From: Girardia tigrina
Taxonomy: Eukaryota
Reading direction: 5' to 3'
Length of the DNA: 64,000 bases
Assembly (NCBI GenBank): GCA_001938485.1
Contig: MQRK01249566.1
Location: forward strand, 12,943-76,942
Shown here: in pieces, positions 13,029 to 63,742 of the stretch
Numbering within the stretch: the stretch's first letter is position 1
How the letters are laid out: every line of letters starts with the position of its first letter
Program-made: the position numbers and the translations under genes
Notes under the pieces: generated by a model
Seen by the model: the letters and a program-made list of their open reading frames with translations, nothing else
Databases searched by the model: none
Told to the model about the DNA's origin: nothing

Positions 13029-14358
13029 TTGGGTGTACAACTAATTAATTTCGTATTTTTTTGGTAAAAAAACCATTTATTTAAGTATAAAAGTGAAAAA
13101 ATATTTTATTCAAAATATTGTCCATTAGAAGCGACAACTTAATGCCATCTGTCAGGCAATTTATGGATTCCATCCCGAAAAAACTTCTCATCTTTTGCAC
13201 CGAGAAAGTCATCAAGCCATTTTTTAATACCTTCAACATTGGTGAACCGTATTCCAGAAAGGTGATTCTGCATCGACCGAAACAAGTGGTAATCAGAAGG
13301 AGCTATGTCTGGGCTATAAGGCGGGTGAGGTAGAATTTCCCATCCGGCATTTTCCAAATAATTTTTGACCGGTACTGCAACATGTGGTCGACCATTGTCA
13401 TGATGGAAAATCAATTTCTCGTGTCTGGTCGCCCATTCTGGCCGTTTTACGGCTATTGCTTGCTTCAAACGTATCAATTGTTGCCTGTATAGCTCTCCTG
13501 TGATCGTCTGGCCAGATTTTAATAGCTCATAGTACAGCACACCCTTCTGATCCCACCAAATACAGAGCATTACCTTCAAACCATGAATATTCGGCTTTGG
13601 TGACGATTTGGCTGGTTGGCCTGGCTTTCACATATGATCTTTTACGCTTTGGGTTGTCGTAATGAAACCACTTTTCATCGCCGGTGACAATACGATGTAA
13701 AAACGGTTTCTTTTTGTGGCAATTAAGCAGCATTTCAGACATGCAAAATCGTCTCTCAACGTCTCTCGGCTTCAATTCGTGTGGCACCCAATTTCCTTGT
13801 TCCTGAATGTATCCGGCTGCTTTTAAACGTTTAGAAATGGNNNNNNNNNNNNNNNNNNNNNNNNNNNNNNNNNNNNNNNNNNNNNNNNNNNNNNNNNNNN
13901 NNNNNNNNNNNNNNNNNNNNNNNCAAACTTTTTTGATGGACCTGATCGCTCTTTGTCTTCTGTGTCAAAATCGCCACTTTTAAATCGTGCAAACCCCTGC
14001 TGACATACTCTAACCTCTGGAGCATATTCAGGATAAGCTTCTAAGAGTAAACGATGTGCTTCTGTTGCACTTTTCCTTAAATTAAAGAACAAAAGCAAAC
14101 CTCCTCGCAAATGCTGTTTTGTTGGAACGTAATTTGACATTTTGACTGTAATAAAAAAAATTNNNNNNNNNNNNNNNNNNNNNNNNNNNNNNNNNNNNNN
14201 NNNNNNNNNNNNTGACTACATAAATAGATATGAGGTTAGTAACAAATTCGAAATGAGGTAACAAATATGAAATGAGGTAACAAATATGAAATGAGGTAAC
14301 AAATACGAATATAAGGTTATTTCGTAACAAACACGAAATTAATTAGTTGTACACCTAA
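13029..14358 (-). mobile_element. Mariner (DD34D), Mos1/mauritiana-like, near full length, frameshifted transposase 14140->13139
   Basis: TIR TT(G/A)GGTGTACAACTAATTAATTTCGT at both ends with TA TSD; WVPHEL, TGDEKW, HDNGRPH, YSPDIAPSDY; two N-runs inside; 19-bp tandem repeat in the 5' UTR. Confidence 0.95.
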
Positions 14359-20125: not shown

Positions 20126-21670
20126 CAGGGGATTTCAATTCTACTATTTCAATTTACTATTTCTATTACCCAATATTTCAAATCTATATACCCATTCCCT
20201 TAATTTAGATTTTCAAAATGCAAATGACAGAAAGAAAACAAAGAAAGTTTATAACTAAATATATAAATAACTTCGTAATGAGTTTGTTAGGCAATGGCCA
20301 TCAAAGCATAACCAACATTGCTCGTATGACCAATCTGGAGAGGAAAACCGTGTCTAAAATACTTAAAAATCATTCTTTAGGTGTAGAAATCGTATCATCA
20401 AGCACGAAATGTAAAAATACCTGTTAATTACGAAATTCAATATTTTCCAATTGTGAGCAGTTAATTTTCAACACCATTTCTTGTGACAATTCTCTCAACC
20501 AACGTGAGATAAAAGAAGAACTTGTCGAAAAGTTGGATATAAACCTATCTTTACCAACAATTTTCAGAAAAAATAAAAAATTAAGTTTCACTAGAAAAAA
20601 ACTATTGCAAATTCCAGAAGAAACAACTCGTTAGCTGAACAAAACGCATATATTCAAGTACCCGGTATAGACACTGTGAGGATTGACAGATTTATAGCTC
20701 TTTCTTGATTCGGTGGGTTGTGGTGCATGGCCATTCTTAGTTGGTGGAGCGATTTGTCTGGTTAATTTCGTTAACGAACGATACTCTCACCTGCTAAATA
20801 GTACATTTGTGTTAAATCGCAAATGCTGATTAGAGGAATAAATAGCGTTTAGCTAAATGAAATGGAGCAATAAGAGGTCTGTGATGTCCGGGGCCGCACG
20901 CACGCTACAATGGCAATACCAGCCAGTTTTATTCCTAGCTAGAAATGGCCGGGTAACCTGCTGAATCACTGTCGTGTCAGGAATAGTGGATTTAAATTAT
21001 CCCACTTGAACGATGAATTCCTAGTAAGTGCAAGTCACTAGCTTGCGCTGATTACGTCCCTGCCCTTTGTAGACACCACCCGTCACTACTACCGGTAACG
21101 TACCTGCAAACAGAAATGTCAACAGAAGTCTAATTTGTGCTATTTGCATAAACGGTGTTATTTCATATGAAAAAGAAATTGGAGCGTCCAATTCAGATGC
21201 CTCTGTGGAGTTTTTAATTATGAAAATACTTCCATATTTCAGAAATAATACAACTTCCATTCTAATTATGGACAATGCAAGACTTCAAGAGACAAACGTT
21301 GTTTTGGCCTTTCTAAGAGAAAATAATGTCACATTAAAATTTCTTACATTATATTCTCCGGAATATAATTCCATTGAAGAATTTTTTTCAATGGTAGGGT
21401 CAAGATTTAGTGGTGTGAGAATTGAATTTCCGAATTTGTCGACTATGGAATGTATCGATCGCGTTCTCTCCAAAAACGATTATTAGTCGAGTCAATGTCG
21501 AGGATTCTTCAATCATATTTTGGAATGGTTTAAGAAAGCGCTCAAAAGACAGTCCTTTACTTAATAACTTATGTCTTATGTATTTTTGTGTTTATGTATT
21601 AAAAAATCTAAATTGTATGAAATAGATATATAGAATTGAAATATTGGGTATATAGAAATGAAATACCCTG
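20126..21670 (+). mobile_element. Tc1/IS630-like element with imperfect TIRs and TA TSD, interrupted by an 18S rRNA fragment
   Basis: TA-CAGGG... start and ...CCCTG-TA end; HTH-like N-terminus (20218), ILIMDNAR and YSPEYNSIEEFFS; the first catalytic-D region is missing where the 18S insert lies. Confidence 0.85.
20660..21094 (+). rRNA. Degenerate 18S rRNA fragment (3' part of the gene, ~435 bp), pseudogenic
   Basis: Universal SSU tracts: gaggattgacaga, ggtgcatggcc.ttcttagttggtggagcgatttgtctggttaatt, ggtctgtgatg, ggccgcacgc.cgctaca, gattacgtccctgccctttgta.acacc.cccgtc.ctactaccg; several universally conserved positions are mutated. Confidence 0.95.
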
Positions 21671-30520: not shown

Positions 30521-31890
30521 CAAATTCTTCCTATATGAAGTACAATTAGACTTATCCGGGGTACTCAGCTAAGGTCCACATTCTTTTTATTAATATTACT
30601 GAGCCCCTTAAAACATTTTATAATTTCTAAAATTTGTTCCTTAACTCATAATCCTTTCAGTTAATTAAATTTTAATCTAAATAATAATTATTCATAAAAG
30701 TTTATTTAATAATTGTCATTCTCAGTTATTACATCCCCACCAAATCGATGTAACAGTTTCTTGCTTCAATTATTTTCGGTTGTCTGAGTTTATTGTGGCT
30801 GAAAAGTTAATTTTAAATTAGTCTAATAGAATAAAAATTAACAGAGAATTTTGATATTTGCCTAATTTTTTTCAAAAAAAATCACTGTCTGTTCAGGAAA
30901 ATGAAAGTCAAAAATAGAATTTTCAAAACAGAATAATGAAACCAAGTTTTGTTTAGTTTTATTTATTATTGATGAGACACTAAAATCTACTAATTAATAT
31001 TCAAAATTGGTAAAATAAGACAATTTAAATTCTTTAAATCTTTAATTAAATAAATACAATTAGCCATTAATATCCGATTAAATTATTACTCGCCGCTGAC
31101 ATTTACAGAGGTCTTTAGACTTTTGTTTTTCTCAATTCGCATTCATAATACTCAAATAATTTGTACAATTATTTTATGAACATTATTATCAACATCACAA
31201 TTCGAGTGTAGTAAGAACACCGATTTGACTTTTCATATTTTTATTTAAACAACAATTTTGATTCTCCTTAAGACAATCTTTATCAAAGCTTTCATACAAG
31301 TGCATTCTAAACTAAATTGATTAATAAATTAATTTTTATTATTTTTTTAGCAAATGGAGAAATAAATAATTTATTAAAATATTTACTCAAAACTTATTGG
31401 ATAAAAATTCAAATCATTATTACTTATTTAAAAAATATTAATTTGATTTATTTATTAAAAATCAATTAACTTATTTAAAATTTTGCAATTATTTTCAATT
31501 AAAAATAAATTTAAACATTACATATTTTTAGATAATAAGAATTAAAATATTAATTATCCATCTGGGTAGGAGAGACATAAATTCAAATCAGCATACAACA
31601 TTCAAACGAAAAACATCAAACACTCAAGATATTCATCGCATGGGTAATAATACCAGAACTATTTTAATTAAAAATTTTAAGTTGTGAAATAACCTTACTT
31701 TGCCCATTCTAAATGTTAAGTGATATGCTGTAGTGTCTTATTTGTGGAACAATATGTAGTGCCAAAGTAGTCTTTGTAACATCCAAAGTTCAAAGTTTCC
31801 TCTCCAATAAATAGAAAACAGTTTGTGATTGGCATTCTAATCTAGTATATAAATTTAATTGTCACGGGTGTCAAAACTTGTACATCCGAG

Positions 31891-31992
31891 AGGGATTGTA
31901 CATCCGCACAGGAATAGACTGTGCGGCCAGTGGGCATACTTCTACGTAGTATCCCTGAGTAACTAGAGATCTCGGTCTCTAGGCTAGTGTCC
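31891..31992 (+). ncRNA. HDV-like ribozyme fold, copy 1 (somewhat degenerate)
   Basis: P1 AGGGAU/AUCCCU, J1/2 hairpin CCGCACAG/CUGUGCGG, P2 GGGCAU/GUGUCC, P3 ACU/AGU, L3 UCUACGU, P4 CUAGAGAU/GUCUCUAG, J4/2 GCUA. Confidence 0.7.
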
Positions 31993-32298
31993 AAGAGCTA
32001 GCCGATTATTACGGAACAGCCGGCAATATATCGTATTCAGGAATGGGCCAGCAATCCATTGACGGCTGTGGGGAGTAGTGACCCCGCTGTCGGTGGTTGG
32101 ATTGCATCTTAATGATCTGGGATGAATCAATCCCGGTGAAGGGTGTTGTAATGACGTCGTTGCATCTTCGGACAGGCGGAACTAAGGTATGGATCCCAAC
32201 ATTGGGGGAGTGTTCGTTGAGAACCATCACCGTCCCAGGCCTCCTAAAAAGCCTCAGACTTAATACCGTTAAAGGAGTAGAGGTGCACATCCGAGAGC

Positions 32299-32387
32299 AG
32301 GGATCACTGTTTGATAGGCAAGTTTGGACATCCCTCCCCGTGGTATCCCTGGGAAACTAGAGTTCCATTCTCTAGGCGAAAGCGTCC
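32299..32387 (+). ncRNA. HDV-like ribozyme fold, copy 2 (somewhat degenerate)
   Basis: P1 AGGGAU/AUCCCU, P2 GGACAU/GCGUCC (1 mismatch), P3 CCC/GGU (1 mismatch), L3 UCCCCGU, GGGAAAC, P4 CUAGAG/CUCUAG, J4/2 GCGAAA. Confidence 0.7.
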
Positions 32388-32966
32388 TGAGCTGCGCCAT
32401 TTGCTGTTTTGAACGGTCGGCAGCCGATGTAAGCGTTACTTGACTAGCAAACCAGTTTCTTGAAGGCAGAACTAAATGTCATGGCTGTAGGGAGTAGTGA
32501 CCCTGCAGTCGCGTTTTCGATTGCATCGCAATGATCCAAGGTTTCTAATCTTGGTGAGGGGTGTTGTGAAGCCGGTTCGCCAGGGGAGCTTAGGCACACA
32601 AATCCCCGTATAGGAGAAGTACCTTTTGAAGCCATTAGCGTCTCAGACTTCCTAAAAAACCTCAGACTTAATACTTTTATAGGATGACAGGTTTACATCA
32701 GAGAGACAAATCGTCATCTCAAAACTCGGATTAGTGAGCACTCGCAAATGAGTCGATCAAGTAAGATTCTTGATCATTGGTTATGTTGTAAGGATAGAAC
32801 CTCATCCATTTCAAAAAGTGAGTTTTCTGTTCTACAAAAGGGAATCGATTCACAATATGAACGACAGTTTTGTGAATCTCTACTAATAAAACACTACAAC
32901 CCATCAATTAACATTCAGAATTGGCAAAGTATACGTGATTGTACAATCAATTATGCAATAAATGTT

Positions 32967-33410
32967 CTATTTGAAAATTCGTAACAGAGAAGTTGAGTGT
33001 GAAGCTTGAATAATTATTTTGGGATCCATGGATCTTATTAATAAGGCTTCACACGTTACTCTCTCCCAGTAATTCTTAAATCCATTACACAGAATTCGAA
33101 AATCATTTTCTTCGATTTTCTTTTTACATTTTAAAGTATGTTCGGCAATATTGATCCCATTATCCAATCGACTATGCTCTTTGATCTGTTTGCAGAGATG
33201 ACGAGATGTCTCTGCAATGTATGTGGCGTTACACTCATTACACGTATATTTATTTACAAGATCGGAGCACAAATCGAGAGGAGTGGGAGATTTATTGCTG
33301 AATATATCATGAATTTTATATGATTGGGAAATAATTTTTGATTCATGGTATTTGGGATCAAACTTTTCAAAATTGATGATTTTAAATGTGTAAAGCCCTC
33401 TGAATAAGGA
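32967..33410 (-). pseudogene. Penelope-like GIY-YIG endonuclease C-terminal fragment
   Basis: KYTCNECNATYIAETSRHLCKQIKEH...NYWERVTCEALLIRSMDPKI. Confidence 0.9.
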
Positions 33411-36245
33411 ATCGATAAGATATGTCTTGATTCAAATGGGTATATGAAAATTATGAAAACATAAAAATTATGTATATAATGTGAAAAAAATCAAAATTAT
33501 GTAAAATTATGTATTTAATATGAGAAAATATCAATTTAATATCAAAAAATAAATTAAATATGAAAAAAATCTTAATTTATTATGCAAAATAGACTCCAAA
33601 TGTAAAATTTTTATTCATAGTTATTAAAACTTCTTCCTTGGTGACAAGCTGAATTGCAAAAGTGTATTTTAAAAGTATTTTTCATATTAAATTGATATTT
33701 TTTCATATTAAATGTTAATATCAATTTCATAATTGAATAATTTTTTTTAGAAAAACTGCCGAGTTTGTGAATTTGGCAATTACATAAATTCGACATAACA
33801 TATATTAAAATATTGATTAATAAGGCTTATTATTATAAGAAAAACCAAATTTATTTCTTCATAACCTCATATTAATCCCCAAATCATTATTATTATCAAA
33901 ATATTTATATTATTTTAACTTTATTATAAAAAATCTGTTCTGTTTAAATTTTTTTATACTGATTTATTTATAATTATATTTTGTTTCATTTCATTAAAGT
34001 TGAATTTCAAGCTTCAACTTTAACAATAAATAGCAAAGATTCAGAAAGTTGTGTCTAAAAAGAACAACTGACACTTTTAAGATGGAAAATAAAAAACAAA
34101 AGTTTGCTAGCGTTAAAGAAACTTTAGCTTTTACATTAAAGAAAATCTATTGTAAAAATGACAATGTAACACAATTTTAAAAGATATTTTCCGTAGCATA
34201 TAACGGCTTTTTGCAAAGAATGAATGTCTCTCATGAACAAATCACGACCTTGATGACTTTTTCTAAAGAAGTTTTAAGGAAAAGTTATATCAGATGAAAT
34301 ACCTAATCAAATGGAGTCCAAACATGATGAAGAAATTCTGATTTTAATTTAATGATGGATTAATTAGGAATGTAGTACTTGATTCCTTCGTGATTAAGAA
34401 TTAAAATAATTTTCCATATAACATAACATTCTTATCGTAAATTAAAGTTTAATAAATCATTATCCGTTCCTAACCTTCTCTAATCATTCACATCTTCAGC
34501 TGGTATACCTATTAAAGTTCATTTCTCATCCAATCTAACCATTGATTAAAAATTATTTCATTGATGGTCACCCAGGCTTTCGTTTTTTCATAATCAATTT
34601 GCGTATTTTGCTTGACTTTCCGTGGTCCCATGGGTTCTTTCGAACTTATCAACAACGTTACGATTTCTGGCGGATACGCAATTCAATGGCCTAGATTGTC
34701 TGTCCATTACTTCCGAACAATTTTAAATGCAAGAGATCTACTTATAAATTAGAAGTAGTTTATATTAATTTTTATTGTTTTTTTGAATCAAAGCACTTTG
34801 TCCACCATGGACACATTGAGATCAGTGACTGTGTAACTTTTTGCAATATTTTGCTTGATTCCAACACTATTCTTTTAATTACAAATTATTGAAAAGAAAT
34901 TGTTTTCAGGATTAATTTTCAAATGAAATTTAATATTAACTTTTAATTAATGCTAATTTAATATGGTTTAATTTTCTTCTCGAAATAAATTAATTTAAAA
35001 TAAAGAGAATTAAAATTGACTTTGGATTGTTTCCGTCTTTCTAAAATATTGACATTGCATCTTCTGCATTATCAACGAAGAGGTCCAGTAAAAAAATTTT
35101 CTTGCATCGCTTGTAAGTTTGATTCATTGACTTTAGAGTTCCGGAATGTTTACCGTTTATTAATCAAGAAGTCCATGGTAATCAATCACAGTTTGTTACA
35201 ATTTGATTGATTCCTTTCCTCAACAGTTATTTCCGTAGAATTTGTACATTATAAATCATCATAGTACCTATATGTTCTGACGTGAATAAGTACATTTGAA
35301 TAATGTTAACAGAAAGGGATGTTTGAATCATTTATTTTCATTTTTCTTTTTTTAATTATTAAAATTATTGTGTAGTCGCAGCGTGACCATTGCAGCGCTG
35401 ATGACTTGTTCCACAGCCGTGATTATTGATCCCGGCCTCGGGGAACTGTGCAAAAGAAAAAACTTCCTCATTTTGTTTCCTCCGTCTGATTCGACTCCCT
35501 GATTATCGCAGCCCGTGACCAGGCTTTCCGGGGCTCAGCCATAGAACAAGATAATTACAAGATTTTGCCTTAGTTTTTCTATTTCGTTAAAAATCAATAA
35601 AAATTTATTCAATTTCAAAATCCAACGCTTTCCTGTCTTCTCCCGAATAAATATCAATTTTATTAAATTCAATTTTCCTTCTCAACCGCCACAATAAATT
35701 ATTCAAGGTCGGTGGAATCACATAAAAATTTATTTTCGCAAAAGAATTCTATTTTCTCATAATCTCAACCAGGCAAATATTGCTTCCATCGATCATTTTT
35801 GTGAAAGTTTTGAAATCAATTTCATAATTTCTGTGACCATAAATTTACGTTTCAGTTTATTGTCCTTCAGTGTATCTCATACTACACTAATTTCTCAAAT
35901 GGAAGTATTTCTAGCAATAACAATTCAAAACATACAACAACTTTTATACGTGTGGGATAAATTAATATTTGTAAATAATTTATCATCAAATTTAATTAGA
36001 CATGGTTCAAAAATATTCCTATATTTTAACTCTCCTATTTTTGAAATACGATTTTATAAAATGACAAATTTGTTTAAATATTGTTAGAAATCGCGTGAAA
36101 ATTTAATATACTGTTTTTTTAAATAAATTTTGGTTGTATTTGCATTTTTTCTGTTATCTTTATTTTAAACCAAAACTTTTTCTACTCAAAAAAATATTTA
36201 AACAAAAAATCTGAACATTTTATTCTTTGTTAAAATTAACTATAA

Positions 36246-36604
36246 GCCTCCTCCCCACGGCGGCAGTACATGAACCTGGATAGAATTCATGCGGCACTTA
36301 CCCGTCATTAATGACATATAGGGACTATCAGGAGCTGAGTCTGTTGTATCATTGTGTAGACAAACTCGTCTACCCTCAACTGGTCATGGGCCCCGCCGTT
36401 AGACGTTTCCACGATCCCGCTCAGAGATAGCATGCCTTTAAGGAGGTGGATTGCAGGCCTTGGCCCTCCGTACTATCGTTGCTCGGCATCCAACAAAGGC
36501 AAGCTTCGGACACTTTAGCCTAGAGAGAATTCTAGTTTCCCAGGAACACCACGTGGAGGTATGTCCGATTGGCTTAACACAGGTTACCAAAGTAACAGGT
36601 CCCC
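36246..36604 (-). mobile_element. 359-bp non-autonomous retroelement-like insert with a 5' HDV-like ribozyme and 13-bp TSD
   Basis: GC-rich island flanked by the direct repeat aaattaactataa (36233-36245 and 36605-36617); the first base of the insert is the predicted ribozyme G1. Confidence 0.85.
36506..36604 (-). ncRNA. HDV-like self-cleaving ribozyme fold, copy 3 (best conserved)
   Basis: P1 GGGGAC/GUUCCU with a G.U wobble at the cleavage site, P2 UCGGACAU/GUGUCCGA, P3 ACC/GGU, L3 UCCACGU, P1.1 CC/GG, GGGAAAC, P4 CUAGA/UCUAG, J4/2 GCUAAA (catalytic C opposite position 36518). Confidence 0.85.
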
Positions 36605-39099
36605 AAATTAACTATAAATTTTTTAACACTTTTTTACATAATATAAATTTGTTTATTATTTTGATTCCTTTCTTTGTATTATTAATCAGTGTTTCTTCAT
36701 ATTTTTTGATTTAGAAACAAAACGTGAACAGAAAAAAGTGCACATAGAAAAATTGGCACGTGAAAAATTACGCACATGGAAACGAATTTTTATATTAATA
36801 ATTCAATTTAAACGAAAACAAATGCAGCCAAAATAAGTATATTTTCATAAAGTCTAAAATTTATTGAGAACCAACAGAAATGATTGATGAACAGAAATAT
36901 AAACTACTGTATATCAGCTATTGTCCTTAAATAAGATAATTAATTTTATTAACTACTCACAAAATTAAACTCCTAATATTTTTCAAACTTATCTTCTTTT
37001 AATCACCATTTTAAAATCTTCGTTAATGTTTTACTTTCGTTATTTAGCCATGCGTTTAAAATTTAAACTTTGGACACTTACTCATTTTCGATGGCGAGAA
37101 ATGATTATGTAAAAATTTGACCGAAAAAAACTTTTTAAAATCCCAAAATGGGAAAATTCGGAGATCCCGAACAGTTTTAATTGCAAGAGATCTACTTATA
37201 AATTAGAAGTAGTTTATATTAATTTTTATTGTTTTTTGAATCAAAATATTTTACATGTTAAATTTTTAAATTTTAAAAACTTTGTTTGAAAAGTAGAGTT
37301 TTGTCTAAATAAAGAATGGATATAAAAAATTTAATTTTTTGATTTACTAGTTTAAATTATTTAGAAAGTATTTCCCCTTGAAAAATTGTTTCCAATAAAA
37401 ATTTTAATAACTTTTTAAAAAATTAACTTCAATTAATTATTTAGAAAATATGATTTACTTATAAAATTTTTTTTCAATAAAATTATGATTTTAAATATTT
37501 AGATATTTTTCATTTTCAAATATTCAAAAAATTATCAATTCTCGAAATCTTAACAAATCATATTTTATTTTTCGTTTCCCTCTTAGAAGTACATTTTTTC
37601 ATGTGCGCTTTCATACCTATGGGGTATTTTTTGAGTGCGCTTTTTTCATTACTCTTTTTTTCGCAAACTCAAACTAAATTAATAATCCATACAGATTAAA
37701 AAATATAAAAATCAGAACAATTACAAATAAAACATCATTGAATAATTAATATTATCAAGTTCATTTGAACCCACTCCGAATAATAATTAATATTATTATA
37801 TTATTATCGAAACGGTCAACCCGGTCAAATGTGTCCAGAAACGGAAACAGATAGACAAAAAAAAGAAAGAAAGGTTCAATTACCATCGCAAACGACTCCT
37901 GTTCTCGAACATTTATAGTTATATTATTTAAAGTGCCAAAGACATTTTTTCGCATAAATTAAAGAATGAACCTTTACAACAACGATTCTCTTAACATTGA
38001 AGATAATTCCAAATAATTTTCCGATATAGATTGGTGTGGAAAATGATAAAATATTGAAAATAAAACTTGTTTTTGGAAGAAGATTCTTGAATGGATTTAG
38101 ACATTTGTTATCTTTAAAATAATCCTTATTTTTTATACAGCAAAAAATATTTTAAGAGCTTGATTATTTATCAGTAATCCATTATTGATTCTTTAATTAC
38201 TTTATCACACCTTTACATCGAACGTCTATATAGTATGATGGGGATTTCCACTTTTAATAAGACAACACATTTTTACCATTTTTTCTTCTCTTTAGAAGAT
38301 CAAACATCGTAATGTTTTACATACAAGTCATTTACACACCACATTGACTATTATGAAATTTGTTAATATTAAAATACTTTAATATGATTAGATAAATCAC
38401 TTTCGACATACAAGCTTGGTTTTAAATATAATATTTTTAATATAAAAAAGGTTTTAGAAAATTAAGTAAATATTATTTAATAAAAATTTATTAATTTATT
38501 CTAATTTTTGGAATTAATTTTGCAATAATATTAAATGTTTAAAAACATATTCTAATAAATCTTATTTATAAAGGCAAATGTATGTTTATCTATTCACTCT
38601 GCAGTTGTAGACGGTACCACAAAATGCAACCAAGTTATCCACATACACTCAAGCAAAGGTTTATGCCAACTTTTTTACTGAGAAAATATTATGCTTTTCT
38701 TTGATACAGACTGCTTACATACCTGAGCAATAGGATTGCAGTAATTCAAAATATGTAGGTAGCGAATAGAATCAAAGACTGTGTGAGCTCTCATATACTA
38801 TCAATAGCACGTTCTACTTTGAGATAGTTTGCTGAGATATCACATACATACTATCAGATTTTCGAAATGTACGGCGGGTACCTCTGCTGGTATTAAATGT
38901 TTTTTATTTCTATTTTCCAAATAAAATCAGATTTTGCAAATTATTTCTTGTAAATACAATTTAATAATTTTGGTTGAGGAAATATTAATTACCAATTAGA
39001 ATCAAAGTAGATCAAAATACCCTTCAATAACACTACCAGACAAATTTGAACTTTTTGTTATCTTAATGTTTTTTATTTACTTTGAAAAAGTGCAAAAGT

Positions 39100-48883: not shown

Positions 48884-49150
48884 TTGCAATATATTTTGGT
48901 GGATTTTCCACCATCTTCAGGCTGAATTAACAACAATTTCGCTGTCTTATATATAGAAAATTGATGATTATGCAAACATCTTGCGTAATAACTAATTAAA
49001 TATTTTCAACAAAGTGGAAGAGAGACTTGTTTGGACATTAATGGACGGATTAAGTGATTTAATCAATAATGCTTCACAAGTAACTCTTTCCCAATAATTT
49101 TTAAAATTACTGCACAATATTTTAAAATTAATTGTTTTCACCTCCGATTT
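48884..49150 (-). pseudogene. Penelope-like 3' end with a degenerate minimal hammerhead motif (48886-48922)
   Basis: NYWERVTCEALLIKSLNPSINVQ followed by CTGAAGA-T-GGTGGA/AAA/TCCACC-AAAA-TATA-TT. Confidence 0.75.
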
Positions 49151-49314
49151 AGAACTTTTTAAAAGTGGCTTTTGAGAAACCATCTTTATTAATTCAGGAC
49201 TACATGAATTTATACAATTAGGAGAAAGAAGGTAATCCAGTTGCACTGTTTTTTCAGAAGATCGATACAATGGTGGACAAACTGTTGTCTCACAAATGGA
49301 ATAAAGATTAATTA

Positions 49315-50815: not shown

Positions 50816-52142
50816 CAGTGCGTTCCAAAAGTCTGTTCGCACACATTGAAATTTTGATTTATGTTATTTATTAAATTTTTTAATTTGTTTAAATGCTTTA
50901 ATTTAAATAATTTTAGTAAATTTAAAATTGAAATATCAAGACCATTTTTTTAAGATGAATTAATTAAATGTCAATCTTTTAGATTCAATGACAACTCGAA
51001 ATATAGATATAAGGTTTAGGATTATTATTGTAGAATTAATGAACGAGGGTCATTCAACGGGTCGGATACAAGAAATTATGAAGGTTAGACATGGTATCAT
51101 TGTTTCAAAGCGGGGCATTCAAAAAATTGTACATAAGTTCAAGACATTAGGGACATATGAAGATAAAAACTTAGTGGACGACCTTCAAAATTACCAAAAC
51201 CTTCTGAAAGAATTATTCGCCGTATATGCTTGAAAAATAGGCGTATGTCGATAAGTAAAATAATAGGAGCTTTCAATGAAGCTGGAATGATACATGCATC
51301 ACGAAGTACAGTGAATAGAATTTTGATAAAGTACGGCTTAAAAAGTCATTATGCTGTTTGCAAGCCTTTATTGAATGGAAAGCAACGAAAAAGAAGAGTT
51401 GAATGGGCTCGGGATAAACAAAATTGGGACATCGATAAGTGGTCGAATGTAGTTTTTAGCGATGAATATATGTTCCGCACATATAGCCACGCTCGTAGCG
51501 AAATCGTTAGAAGGTTTGACAATGAAAGGCTTAGTCACATTTGTACTAAGAAGGTCCTCCAACACGGTGCCCAAGTTCATGTATGGGGATCTTTCTTCAG
51601 ATTTGGTGTTGATATCTTAAAACGGATAAAGGGAAATTTAAATTCGAAGAACTATAAAGACCTAATTGTCAATGACATAGACATTACAGGGCAATGCTTG
51701 GAATTCCCTCTTCCAAATTTTATATTTCAGCAAGACAATGCGCCTTGCCATCCATCAGCATCAATAGTGTCTTTTTTGAAAACAAAGAAGATAAATATTC
51801 TTGATTGGCCTGCCAACTCACCAGATGTAAACCCATTTAAGAATTTGTGGGGTATTATAAAGAGAAAAATAAATAATATGGATACTATGAATTCAGAGAA
51901 AATGTAGATAGAAATACAAAAGTTATGGTACAACATACCAAGTTCTTTATGTCGTCGACTTGTCGATTCGATGCCGCGAAGGGTGTCTTCAATCATCAAG
52001 ATGAAAGGATACCACACAAAATATTAAAAATAACATTTTTATTTGTAAATATAATATTTACTTCCACTTCATCATCTTTTTACTTAGGAATTTGTATAAG
52101 TGATGATTTTTATGGGTGCGAACAGACTTTTGGAACGCACTG
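50816..52142 (+). mobile_element. Full-length Tc1-like element (1327 bp), inactivated transposase 50988-52027
   Basis: Perfect 27-bp TIR CAGTGCGTTCCAAAAGTCTGTTCGCAC with TA TSD; VFSDE, FQQDNAPCH, WPANSPDVNPFKNLW (E->K); frameshift near 51170 and stop at 51905. Confidence 0.95.
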
Positions 52143-58139: not shown

Positions 58140-59030
58140 TTTTCCAATCTTATAATCTTAAATTAATAAAGGAAACAGTGGAAAAGATACTTTTTAAAGA
58201 TAGTTTAAAATATCCGAGTTTTGCTTTTCCTGATGGATCTAAGAAAGAAATCAAATTATCATTACATATTAACAATATACCTAAATATTGTTTAATTGTA
58301 CCTTATATATACTTCACCAGATAGTTTTTGTGAACTTAAGTATAAAAGAAACATGATTAAAGGTTTACTTTATTGCTCCTGGTCGTTGACTTCCACTTTT
58401 GTTAAATCTGTAGAAAGTGTTAATAAACTAAGTTCGTTGTTAAATAAGAATGGTTATTCTAAATCTTTTCTAGAAAAACTAATAAAGGAAACAGTAGATA
58501 AAATACTTGAAAGATTTTTCGAAAAATCAGAGTTTGGCTTCTCTTGATGGATCTAAGAAAGAAATCGAAGGATCATTAGATATGAATAATATGCCTAAAT
58601 ATTGTTTATGTGTACCTTATTATGAAGGATTTAAAAACTTTAAAAATGCATTGTTAAAAGCAACTAACAATGAATTAAATTTAAAAATTGATTTCATAAA
58701 ATTCAAAATATGTTCAGTAATGAATTTATTACACCTTCAGCAATTTGTTCTGAAATTTTTAGGAATATAAATGTAATGTAAAATATACATTGTAGAGTAA
58801 ACGAATGTATGTAAACGAATTCAAGAACATGGTCGCAAAATATTGCAGAACATAGGAAAAATGTAAATGTGATGTTAATATTGATGACTTCAAAATTCTG
58901 TGAAAGTATTTTGATAGATATTGGGAGAGAGTGTCGTGTGAAGCATTGTTAATTAGGTCACGTTGCCCTAAAATCAATGTTCAATCGGCAGTCTCAACCA
59001 GCTTATTGAGAATTTTTAATTGCCATGATA
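58140..59030 (+). pseudogene. Penelope-like element relic with partial tandem duplication
   Basis: YKRNMIKGLLY, LNKNGYSKSFLEKLI, CVPYYEG, WERVSCEALLIRSRCPKINVQ; 58160-58300 duplicates 58480-58620. Confidence 0.85.
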
Positions 59031-62110: not shown

Positions 62111-62736
62111 GTTAACATTTTTTTATTTATATTTGTCTAATATTTATATGACCAAAATAAAATGGAAGTGAGAAAAACATCACAGAAAATTCTACACATT
62201 GTAAAATTTGGGGGGAGATTTTATTTTACCAAACAATCGAAATAAAATTTCCTAGCAAATTCTTTTATCAACGAAATAGAAATAAAATAGAATTATCTGT
62301 TAAATATTGGAATTCTACCAATTATTATTTTTCCTAGCACAGAAGAATCATAGACGATTTACAGAAACTGGCACACAAACACTCGCAGAATTATCCCTGG
62401 CAGCACACACACCGACAGATTCAAAGAAGTGGGAAATGCAAGAGAGAATATGGCACTTCTCTGTTGTCTGCCGGTGTGTGTATGCGTGTGTTTGATCATA
62501 CCAACTACACATTTGATCGGTTTGTATGTGTGTCAGTGTGGGTGTGTTGTGATCTGCACACTTTGTGTGATCTGCACATGTTAGAAAGTGCAAGTTAAAT
62601 ATGATTTGATCATTAGGTAGACTTTTTTTAATCTAATGGGAAACATTAGCTAATTTTAACGGGCAATAGTTTTGCAATTGAGTTGATCTGGTTTTGTTTT
62701 GTCTGTGGCTCTAGAAAAATTGATTGAGTGAAAGAA

Positions 62737-63311
62737 ATGTCGTTTTGTTGCTTTGGTAACGGAAAATTTCGGTTGACTCGATCAAAAGCCAATACTGATT
62801 GCAATAAAATAAATAATGATACTGAAATTATCGGGGAGAAGTCGCCAATGTTAGACAACGGAAACCCGGAAAATCGGAATTCGAAAGATTGTAATGATCA
62901 TTCTTTTAATCAACAGAAATCGCATGATTCTTCGGACAACGAAGAATCGAAAGTTGTGCTAAGGTCGGAACCCGCTCGTCATAAGGTTACGAATAACGAT
63001 ACGGATAATGTGAACAGCGAGACGAAGTTGAACGAGTCTCGCAACAGCAGTTTCTTGAAATCCGTGTTTCATAAGAGTATTCGATTTGATGAGGAAAATA
63101 TGGAATATAATTCTTCTGTTGCTAATGTTAAAAGACAAAGTTCTCGTTTCCAAAAACCTTTTGTAGCGGCTTCAAGACGTGGCTCATTGTATATTTGTAG
63201 GAATGCCGACGATGTCATTATTACGCCGTTTGCGCAGATTCTGGCGAGTTTACGGAAGGTTCGCGCCAATTTCATGCTGATTACGAATATTACGAGCAAC
63301 CAAGAGAAAAA
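62737..63311 (+). CDS. PDE4: PDE4/dunce exon: alternative N-terminus (ATG 62737) running into the shared UCR1 segment 63201-63311
   Basis: DDVIITPFAQILASLRKVRANF matches PDE4 UCR1 (DDLIVTPFAQVLASLR.VR.NF); internal acceptor tttgtag|g at 63201; donor AA|GTGAGA at 63312. The gene continues beyond the window. Confidence 0.9.
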
Positions 63312-63742
63312 GTGAGAAAAATAATATTTTTATAATACATAAATATTATATATTTGATTTAAAGTCTTGTATTATTTGCTTTATAACAATAGATCATGGT
63401 TTGACTATTTAAAAATCTTATTTTGTGTTAATGATGTCGTCGTTACCTACCCCGACAAATATAAAATATATTAAGTAAATGGTCACATAAACGTTTATGA
63501 TAAGTTATTTATAATAATGAAAAATAATTTACAATAAATAATTTTTAATTATTTATATTAACCAATAATGAACGACTGTTTCGATTTTCAGACAGCGATT
63601 TAATAATTTTCTTTCAATATAAAATTGCAAAATATAATTATAATATTTCTAAAATAAGGAAAAAGTCCAATAAAATTATTAGACGAATTTACGATAATAA
63701 TAAACTTTTTTGTAAATAAATAAATTGAATTATAATTGGACG

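Follow-up and report, generated by a model that had tools for sequence, protein, structure and literature searches.

Two diverged units with predicted HDV-like ribozyme heads, separated by target-site duplications, in the GIY-YIG motif of a broken Penelope-like element

RESULTS

Two short units within a Penelope-like endonuclease fragment

The window analyzed here is a stretch of 64,000 nucleotides from Girardia tigrina (assembly GCA_001938485.1, contig MQRK01249566.1, positions 12,943 to 76,942 of the forward strand). It is a piece of animal genome, very AT-rich (27% GC) and crowded with transposon remains, and it contains a GC-rich island (48 to 50% GC) at 31.88 to 32.71 kb. The island consists of two noncoding units of about 400 bp, U1 and U2, which lie head to tail inside the endonuclease region of a broken Penelope-like element (PLE) and are bounded and separated by three copies of a 12-mer, the target-site duplication (TSD). 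A third unit, U3, with the same kind of predicted hepatitis delta virus (HDV)-like ribozyme at its 5' end, lies on the opposite strand at 36.2 kb. The features are collected in Table 1.

Table 1. Features of the U1/U2 locus and of U3 (window positions)
Feature	Position	Strand	Basis
Host PLE fragment, family 'A', C-terminal GIY-YIG endonuclease region only, broken gene	31739..32931	+	blastn to L002
Left 12-bp TSD copy (up to 14 bp from 31879)	31881..31892	+	pattern search, repeat finder
U1, 393-bp nonautonomous unit with an HDV-like ribozyme head, a variable middle, and a structured 3' domain (32050-32285)	31893..32285	+	
U1 5'-junction filler, 16 nt, with partial extra target copy, if P1 = 31909-31915	31893..31908	+	
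U1 ribozyme (predicted); core 31932-31992	31909..31992	+	model search, pair counts
Middle 12-bp TSD copy	32286..32297	+	pattern search, repeat finder
U2, 396-bp unit, second subfamily; structured 3' domain 32470-32693	32298..32693	+	
U2 HDV-like ribozyme (predicted); 7-bp P1 from 32298, core 32326-32387	32298..32387	+	model search, pair counts
Right 12-bp TSD copy	32694..32705	+	pattern search, repeat finder
Inverted PLE 3'-end fragment, directly upstream of truncated host copy	31641..31748	-	blastn to L002 1581-1688, 88%, opposite strand
PLE family 'B' endonuclease region, tail-to-tail with host	32973..33398	-	tblastn, single high-scoring segment pair across motif; open reading frame 32967-33272
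U3, 359-bp unit; same kind of ribozyme head, body and 3' end unrelated to U1/U2	36246..36604	-	
U3 ribozyme (predicted): P1 from 36604, core 36566-36508		-	
U3 TSD, upstream copy, 13 bp, exact	36605..36617	-	repeat finder
U3 TSD, downstream copy, 13 bp, exact	36233..36245	-	repeat finder

The two flanks of the insertion were compared separately, each against uninterrupted relatives. The right piece (32694-32984) gave 81 protein matches in a search among 1.84 billion representatives; P0002 and P0048, which are low-complexity repeats, were disregarded. RVT_1 was present in 9 of the 10 right-piece matches that were scanned, with the window matching the C-terminal end of the long ones. One match (P0007) also scores on the Pfam GIY-YIG domain PF01541 (28.9 bits; cut-off, 22.6), and a related contig, JACCDN010023602.1 (here L002), carries the reverse transcriptase and the endonuclease within one frame. 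RVT_1 followed by a C-terminal GIY-YIG domain is the PLE layout, and it is through these relatives that we assign the host to the PLEs. Pfam gave no match on the window's own two flank pieces, both of which are too short.

P0001 is the closest uninterrupted relative; its residues 112 to 137 align with the left piece, and the right piece aligns with it from residue 134 on. The alignments thus overlap by four residues, or 12 bp, and the four GIY-YIG motif codons are found both at the end of the left flank and at the start of the right one, so that the preliminary description had correctly placed the insertion at the Y-I-G-E codons of the domain. The DNA gives the same picture. Ungapped blastn alignments equate window positions 31739-31892 with L002 1254-1407 (91% identity) and 32694-32931 with L002 1396-1633 (94%), overlapping by 12 bp on L002, which holds the 12-mer once. 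A second contig, L001, gave the same outcome at 82% identity, and the uninterrupted site was also found in L003 and, twice, in L004.

When at most one mismatch is allowed, the sequence YACATCMGAGAG occurs three times in the 64 kb, left of, between, and right of the two units, as had been described before. The chance expectation is 0.16, and three matches were obtained in 0 of 100 shuffles. The repeat finder lengthens the copies to 14 nt (31879-31892, 32284-32297, and 32692-32705). They differ pairwise by one or two bases, and the middle copy is unlike both outer ones at its first base. Because the 12-mer is single in each of the five unoccupied PLE sites (L001, L002, L003, and two in L004), it is host sequence that was duplicated on insertion and not part of the units. 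Hence, the 12-mer is an ordinary TSD.

What kind of host was entered? Homology to L002 begins at base 1254 of a coding region of about 1,650 bases. Counted relative to L002, the damage to the host fragment comprises one 5' truncation, the loss of its last few codons, and one in-frame stop, with no frameshift, in addition to the one nested insertion locus that holds the two units. The host is a dead stub of about 130 codons, 5' truncated and already broken, and the idea that the units are hyperparasites of an active element is therefore unsupported.

U1 and U2 are diverged members of one kind of unit

U1 and U2 are 65.8% identical across 363 aligned columns, with 63 gap columns. Their 3' domains have blocks of about 80% identity in common, together with 46 common predicted pairs, 8 of which are retained through changes on both sides. 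Since the TSD copies differ by only one or two bases, units this far apart were already different on arrival, and the preservation of the 3'-domain hairpins by compensatory changes points to two subfamilies rather than to a duplication. A recent tandem duplication, already discounted in the preliminary description, is ruled out by this contrast between units that are about 66% identical and near-identical TSD copies. On the predicted pairing, U1 and U2 look as two functional subfamilies of one structured RNA would be expected to look.

All three units are short (359 to 396 bp), contain only spurious open reading frames, and are flanked by TSDs of 12 to 14 bp. The 93-residue frame in U1 is one of the spurious ones; neither exact look-up nor a homology search found relatives of it. 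A head of the tRNA, 5S, or 7SL type was considered and is ruled out, there being no ARAGORN or Rfam match.

All three units open with an HDV-like fold

Each unit opens with an HDV-like double-pseudoknot fold whose helix P1 lies at, or no more than 2 nt from, the TSD boundary. The helices P1, P1.1, P2, P3, and P4 come in the canonical order of the nested double pseudoknot, with a P2 of 6 bp, a P3 of 3 bp with a 7-nt loop, a P1.1 of 2 bp, and a P4 of 6 bp. Over the 17 pairs of P2, P3, P1.1, and P4, 94% of the cells are paired, versus 19 to 56% in controls with slid partners. Upstream of a variable J1/2 insert of 16 to 35 nt stands the 5' strand of P1, and P1 complements are present in all three units. 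P1 of U2 starts at the first base after the 12-mer, and P1 of U3 starts at the first base after the 13-bp duplication. The joining strand J4/2 begins with GGC and continues A-rich in all three cores; catalysis is a prediction from this fold. With P1 at the TSD boundary, the predicted self-cleavage would free an RNA that starts at the element's first base.

When only U2 and U3 were used to build a model (model R1, distinct from the R1 elements discussed below), it detected the U1 core with 53.9 bits and an E-value of 1.6e-12, and the next-best match in the window has an E-value of 0.9. In U1, double changes preserve pairing at one position of P3 and one of P1.1, a value that, with three sequences, was matched by 53 of 500 shuffles. 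Rfam at gathering thresholds reported no ribozyme in the whole window, its only match being an 18S rRNA fragment. A permissive Rfam scan gave RF02682 (21.9 bits; gathering score, 44) and RF01787 (17.5 bits; gathering score, 37) on U3 and RF00094 (19.8 bits; gathering score, 50) on U2. The HDV-type Rfam models are narrow, and the heads were assigned by structure.

U3 separates the stagger from the target

The target of U3 is AT-rich and unrelated to the PLE site. Since U3 has the same stagger at a different target sequence, the stagger of 12 to 14 bp appears to be a property of the integration machinery. The similarity of U3 to U1 and U2 is confined to about 65 nt of the heads (74 to 82% identity). 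The preliminary description had noted a copy at 36.2 kb in an unrelated target, which is indeed there, and had taken it as a sign that any target preference is not family-wide; this second step does not follow, since only the head is common and U3 is therefore uninformative about the site preference of the U1/U2 family.

U3 does bear on two other accounts of the array. In the first, which the preliminary description had put forward as an option, the element RNA would have the 12-mer as its 3' end and would prime with it on a homologous target, so that there would be no true TSD. R1-type elements use read-through into the downstream target for precise initiation, and if the downstream ribozyme cut at 32298, the RNA of the upstream unit would end in the 12-mer, both of which speak for this account. 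We nevertheless consider it very improbable. No 12-mer is present at U3, where the 13-bp TSD consists of sequence from that unit's own target, and the length of the repeat at the PLE equals the U3 stagger. In addition, the repeat is in frame as the PLE motif on both flanks, and it is single in the unoccupied relatives.

In the second account, the units were captured by the PLE reverse transcriptase through template switching during copying, or they are nonautonomous passengers of PLEs. The inverted 3' fragment directly upstream gives the host copy a template-switch-like structure, and hammerhead-bearing retrozymes have been proposed as PLE passengers, according to excerpts of bioRxiv 10.64898/2026.07.22.740005. 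This account would leave three copies of exactly 12 nt without a reason, and U3 has the same stagger far from any PLE. Moreover, blastn found no similarity of U1 or U2 to the 3' region of L002, and Rfam scans at gathering and permissive thresholds found no hammerhead match in the window. We regard capture by the PLE as scarcely credible.

Two observations concern the ends and targets of the units. All three units end in AGG, 0 to 2 nt from the duplication (32283-32285, 32691-32693, and, on the minus strand, 36246-36248). The AGG end is common to them despite the unrelated body of U3 and may be a shared 3'-terminal initiation signal. A nick-site motif common to the PLE and U3 targets was sought by eye and rejected: both are A-rich and then TT, which is too weak at 27% GC.

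The left junction of U1 and the order of arrival

An exact 11-mer, TTGTACATCCG, lies at 31878-31888, where it comprises 3 nt of flank and 8 nt of the 12-mer, and again within the 5' end of U1 at 31896-31906. Such an internal repeat had been reported before, with an extent of 31897-31906; the repeat is there, and its extent is 11 nt. The U1 junction allows two candidates for P1. One, at 31891-31896, forms 6 of 6 pairs and takes two of its bases from the 12-mer; the other, at 31909-31915, forms 6 of 7 pairs and is in register with P1 of U2. The double change in P1.1 of U1 is compensatory in the 7-bp P1 register, the same as that of the second candidate.

The five unoccupied sites have G at position 7 of the 12-mer. 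The left and middle copies and the internal 11-mer have C at this position, and the right copy has A. As the internal 11-mer shares its C with the left and middle copies, it appears to have been copied from the locus's own allele. Most simply, on this sequence evidence, it would have been copied at or after the arrival of U1, by a template switch or an abortive event; an origin as a subfamily-wide relic is less likely. The 12-mers to the left of and between the units look like sisters, which hints weakly that U2 came first and that U1 inserted later at the regenerated left site.

The same base differences bear on whether the block U1-12-mer-U2 was formed elsewhere and reached the host as an uncut dimer transcript or by an exchange (recombination or segmental copying) involving PLE copies that had one unit each. 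The difference of the middle 12-mer from both outer copies at its first base would fit such a transfer, as would the partial tandem and inverted rearrangements among the PLEs of this lineage. A fresh outer TSD, though, would not be expected to share with the middle copy a position-7 base that is unlike that of the right copy and the five unoccupied sites, as the left copy does, and two hits at one site would still have been needed earlier. We think a block transfer improbable.

Other PLE sequences and searches for further copies

The structure of an inverted fragment followed by a direct one is common to the host copy (31641-31748 on the minus strand, 31739-32931 on the plus strand) and to L002. 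In L002, bases 1 to 24 are the inverted PLE fragment, and the homology ends within the 12-mer, one base in from its right edge. This breakpoint, in an independent PLE copy (n = 1), coincides with the presumed top-strand nick of the U1 and U2 insertions; it could be due to chance or mark a fragile or nicked site. L004, a contig of 1 kb, contains two copies of the PLE motif region 227 bp apart (196-207 and 423-434), a partial tandem PLE. Further PLE-derived fragments lie upstream of the host, with a tblastn outer bound of 28534.

A second PLE family, 'B', in which the motif reads Y-I-A-E, is present at 32973-33398 (minus strand), 58305-59020 (plus strand), and 48995-49159 (minus strand). The first of these has an uninterrupted motif, the DNA of which differs from the host's, and its reading frame overlaps that of the host by about 18 bp. 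Neither of the two family 'B' copies that cover the motif (32973-33398 and 58305-59020) has an insertion there; the fragment at 48995-49159 reaches the far C-terminal part only.

A ribozyme-core pattern fitting all three units returned 0 records from metagenome, prokaryotic-genome, and viral contigs, and a 24-nt block of the 3' domain conserved between U1 and U2 returned 0 from genome and viral contigs. A second scan of metagenome contigs yielded L002 only. The bodies of U1, U2, and U3 have no other match in the window. The lineage is sparse in public data, with four short PLE contigs, and a search for close protein relatives of the right piece yielded two short uninterrupted contigs only.

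Elsewhere in the window, an isolated fragment of eukaryotic 18S rRNA lies at 20623-21060 on the plus strand (Rfam RF01960, 292 bits, model positions 1169 to 1653 only). Its surroundings are AT-rich non-ribosomal DNA (non-rDNA), directly 3' of transposase-like coding text, and it may be captured or retro-copied rRNA. Transposase remnants of the mariner type (PF01359) and the Tc1 type (PF13358 and PF01498) are located at 13139-13579 (minus strand) and 51230-51907 (plus strand). The end of an open reading frame at 62728-63315 (plus strand) matches the PDE4 upstream conserved region (PF18100, E = 1.7e-8); a host phosphodiesterase gene probably has an exon here, which points to an animal genome. 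Two runs of N, at 13841-13923 and 14163-14212, are assembly gaps or masking.

DISCUSSION

A probable case of two successive insertions at one nick

How did two different units come to lie at one nucleotide of a PLE? In our view, U1 and U2 are probably nonautonomous retroelements of the class that lacks long terminal repeats (non-LTR), similar to the short internally deleted elements (SIDEs) of Drosophila, that entered one staggered nick on two occasions. That the same point was used repeatedly, as the preliminary description had proposed, is the simplest account of three 12-mers around two diverged units. The units would be transcribed as part of a host transcript, here in sense orientation to the PLE reading frame, and the ribozyme would cut this co-transcript at the element's first base, where P1 is observed to start in U2 and U3. 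The 3' domain would be recognized by the reverse transcriptase of an autonomous long interspersed nuclear element (LINE), and target-primed reverse transcription would begin where the bottom strand is nicked, just 5' of the 12-mer. A top-strand nick 12 to 14 bp downstream would yield the TSD. Because an insertion leaves the upstream flank and the 12-mer intact at its left edge, the nick site could be used again, and a hit at the same nick by a member of the second subfamily would give TSD-U1-TSD-U2-TSD. The extra 16 nt at the 5' junction of U1 would be template-switch filler or the trace of an abortive further event.

The two insertions might also have struck the same nick independently, by chance or through a weak taste for nick sites that are A-rich and then TT|TA, with no targeting of PLEs. 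The target of U3 is unrelated and AT-rich, and the flank upstream of it likewise runs A-rich and then TT; no other occupied PLE site was found, and the two family 'B' copies in the window that cover the motif are unoccupied. Moreover, a scan that selects odd loci favors rare coincidences. These points have to be set against the position of two of only three units in 64 kb at the same nucleotide, which we judge very unlikely without a preference, and against the partial third target copy at the left junction of U1. In the one documented system, as far as the excerpts of PMC3414825 go, TSD-separated arrays mark site-specific machinery. We therefore hold coincidence to be unlikely.

Several observations weigh against the proposal of two insertions by SIDE-like elements. 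It concerns a single locus, and a site preference rests on one array, both family members being at that locus. No further copy of either subfamily was present in the collections searched, and no autonomous partner with the shared 3' domain was found in the window, where the units were compared with the whole sequence, or elsewhere. The five related PLE sites from public contigs are all empty, in a sample that is biased because the contigs were found through uninterrupted reading frames. As for the heads, the HDV-type Rfam models score 17.5 to 21.9 bits, below gathering scores of 37 to 50; the covariation is weak with three sequences, as the shuffles that equal the observed value illustrate; and P1 of U1 is ambiguous between two registers. 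Both self-cleavage and co-transcription are steps that we infer.

The reuse of one nick by two subfamilies would imply a strong sequence preference of the machinery for the PLE site. On whether the 12-mer site is so preferred, we are nearly evenly divided, with doubt slightly ahead. More tentatively still, and with the expectation that it will sooner prove wrong than right, we suggest that the U1/U2 family and its LINE home to the Y-I-G-E-coding DNA of one PLE family in sense orientation. PLE transcripts would supply the promoter, the ribozyme would free the passenger, and the downstream ribozyme of an array would trim the upstream RNA to end in the 12-mer, favoring re-homing.

What would such homing mean? 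Co-transcription-dependent elements with ribozyme heads are known mainly from rDNA, a highly transcribed, multicopy, and tolerant target. If homing to the PLE were true, the site-specific lifestyle of R1 and R2 would have moved from rDNA to the endonuclease gene of another retroelement, and the coding sequence of a retrotransposon would serve as a multicopy "safe harbor," so that the strategy would generalize beyond rDNA. Each insertion would also disable a host nuclease gene, a natural competition between mobile elements. The units would add exchangeable HDV-like heads on unrelated 3' ends outside insects. Were the two hits a coincidence, the locus would still be a clean worked example of TSD-separated nesting.

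Comparison with known systems

Descriptions of a TSD-separated tandem layout have until now concerned elements homing to rRNA genes. A precedent for a target inside another mobile element is Tx1L of Xenopus, a LINE that prefers a site within the DNA transposon Tx1D and whose specificity is established from many copies. To our knowledge, Tx1L has no ribozyme head.

The closest likeness is to Drosophila R1 and the R2/R1 hybrid SIDEs, which combine an R2-type ribozyme head with an R1 3' end and form tandem arrays at the 28S R1 site with a 14-bp TSD between the elements, according to the excerpts of PMC3414825 available to us. Like these, U1 and U2 are short noncoding units in which an HDV-like head is joined to a foreign 3' end, and, as in the R1-site arrays, different elements stand head to tail at one site with TSD copies between them. 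The TSD is of fixed length in both cases (14 bp at the Drosophila R1 site, 12 to 14 bp in U1 to U3), and in both, similar heads are found on elements with unrelated 3' parts, as U3 illustrates beside U1 and U2. Unlike the rDNA target of R1 and R2, the target of U1 and U2 is coding sequence for the GIY-YIG motif of a PLE, with one array seen. Unlike the R2/R1 SIDEs, U1 and U2 have no poly(A) or R1-like 3' sequence, and the autonomous partner was not found.

The heads themselves resemble the ribozymes of R2 and of the R2 SIDEs, which, in the excerpts of PMC3414825 and PMC3774820, have an HDV-like fold at the extreme 5' end with a long J1/2 insert. Cleavage by the R2 ribozyme frees an RNA that starts at the element's first base, and, where the cut falls at the end of the element, R2 has variable 5' junctions, as portions of PMC3774820 report. 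The units are alike in the predicted cleavage at the junction of element and target and in a variable 5' junction with filler and target-derived bases. R2, by the same partial accounts, inserts into the 28S gene with specific machinery of its own, whereas our units have a non-rDNA target, a TSD of 12 to 14 bp, and no ribozyme that Rfam recognizes at gathering level.

NARTc and L1Tc of Trypanosoma cruzi likewise pair a nonautonomous element with a LINE whose HDV-like head it shares, according to excerpts of PMC3185411 and PMC3383444. There, the head also acts as an internal promoter (Pr77), and copies, which live in a protist host, are dispersed and carry poly(A) tails; tandem arrays at one site are not described in those excerpts.

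Self-cleaving ribozymes have, in addition, been associated with PLEs themselves, in PLE hammerheads and animal retrozymes, as stated in the available parts of PMC4209133 and bioRxiv 10.64898/2026.07.22.740005. The PLE-associated ribozymes described so far in the latter are hammerheads, and they belong to the PLE or to its passengers. In contrast, the predicted HDV-like ribozyme of U1 and U2 belongs to a foreign insertion in the PLE.

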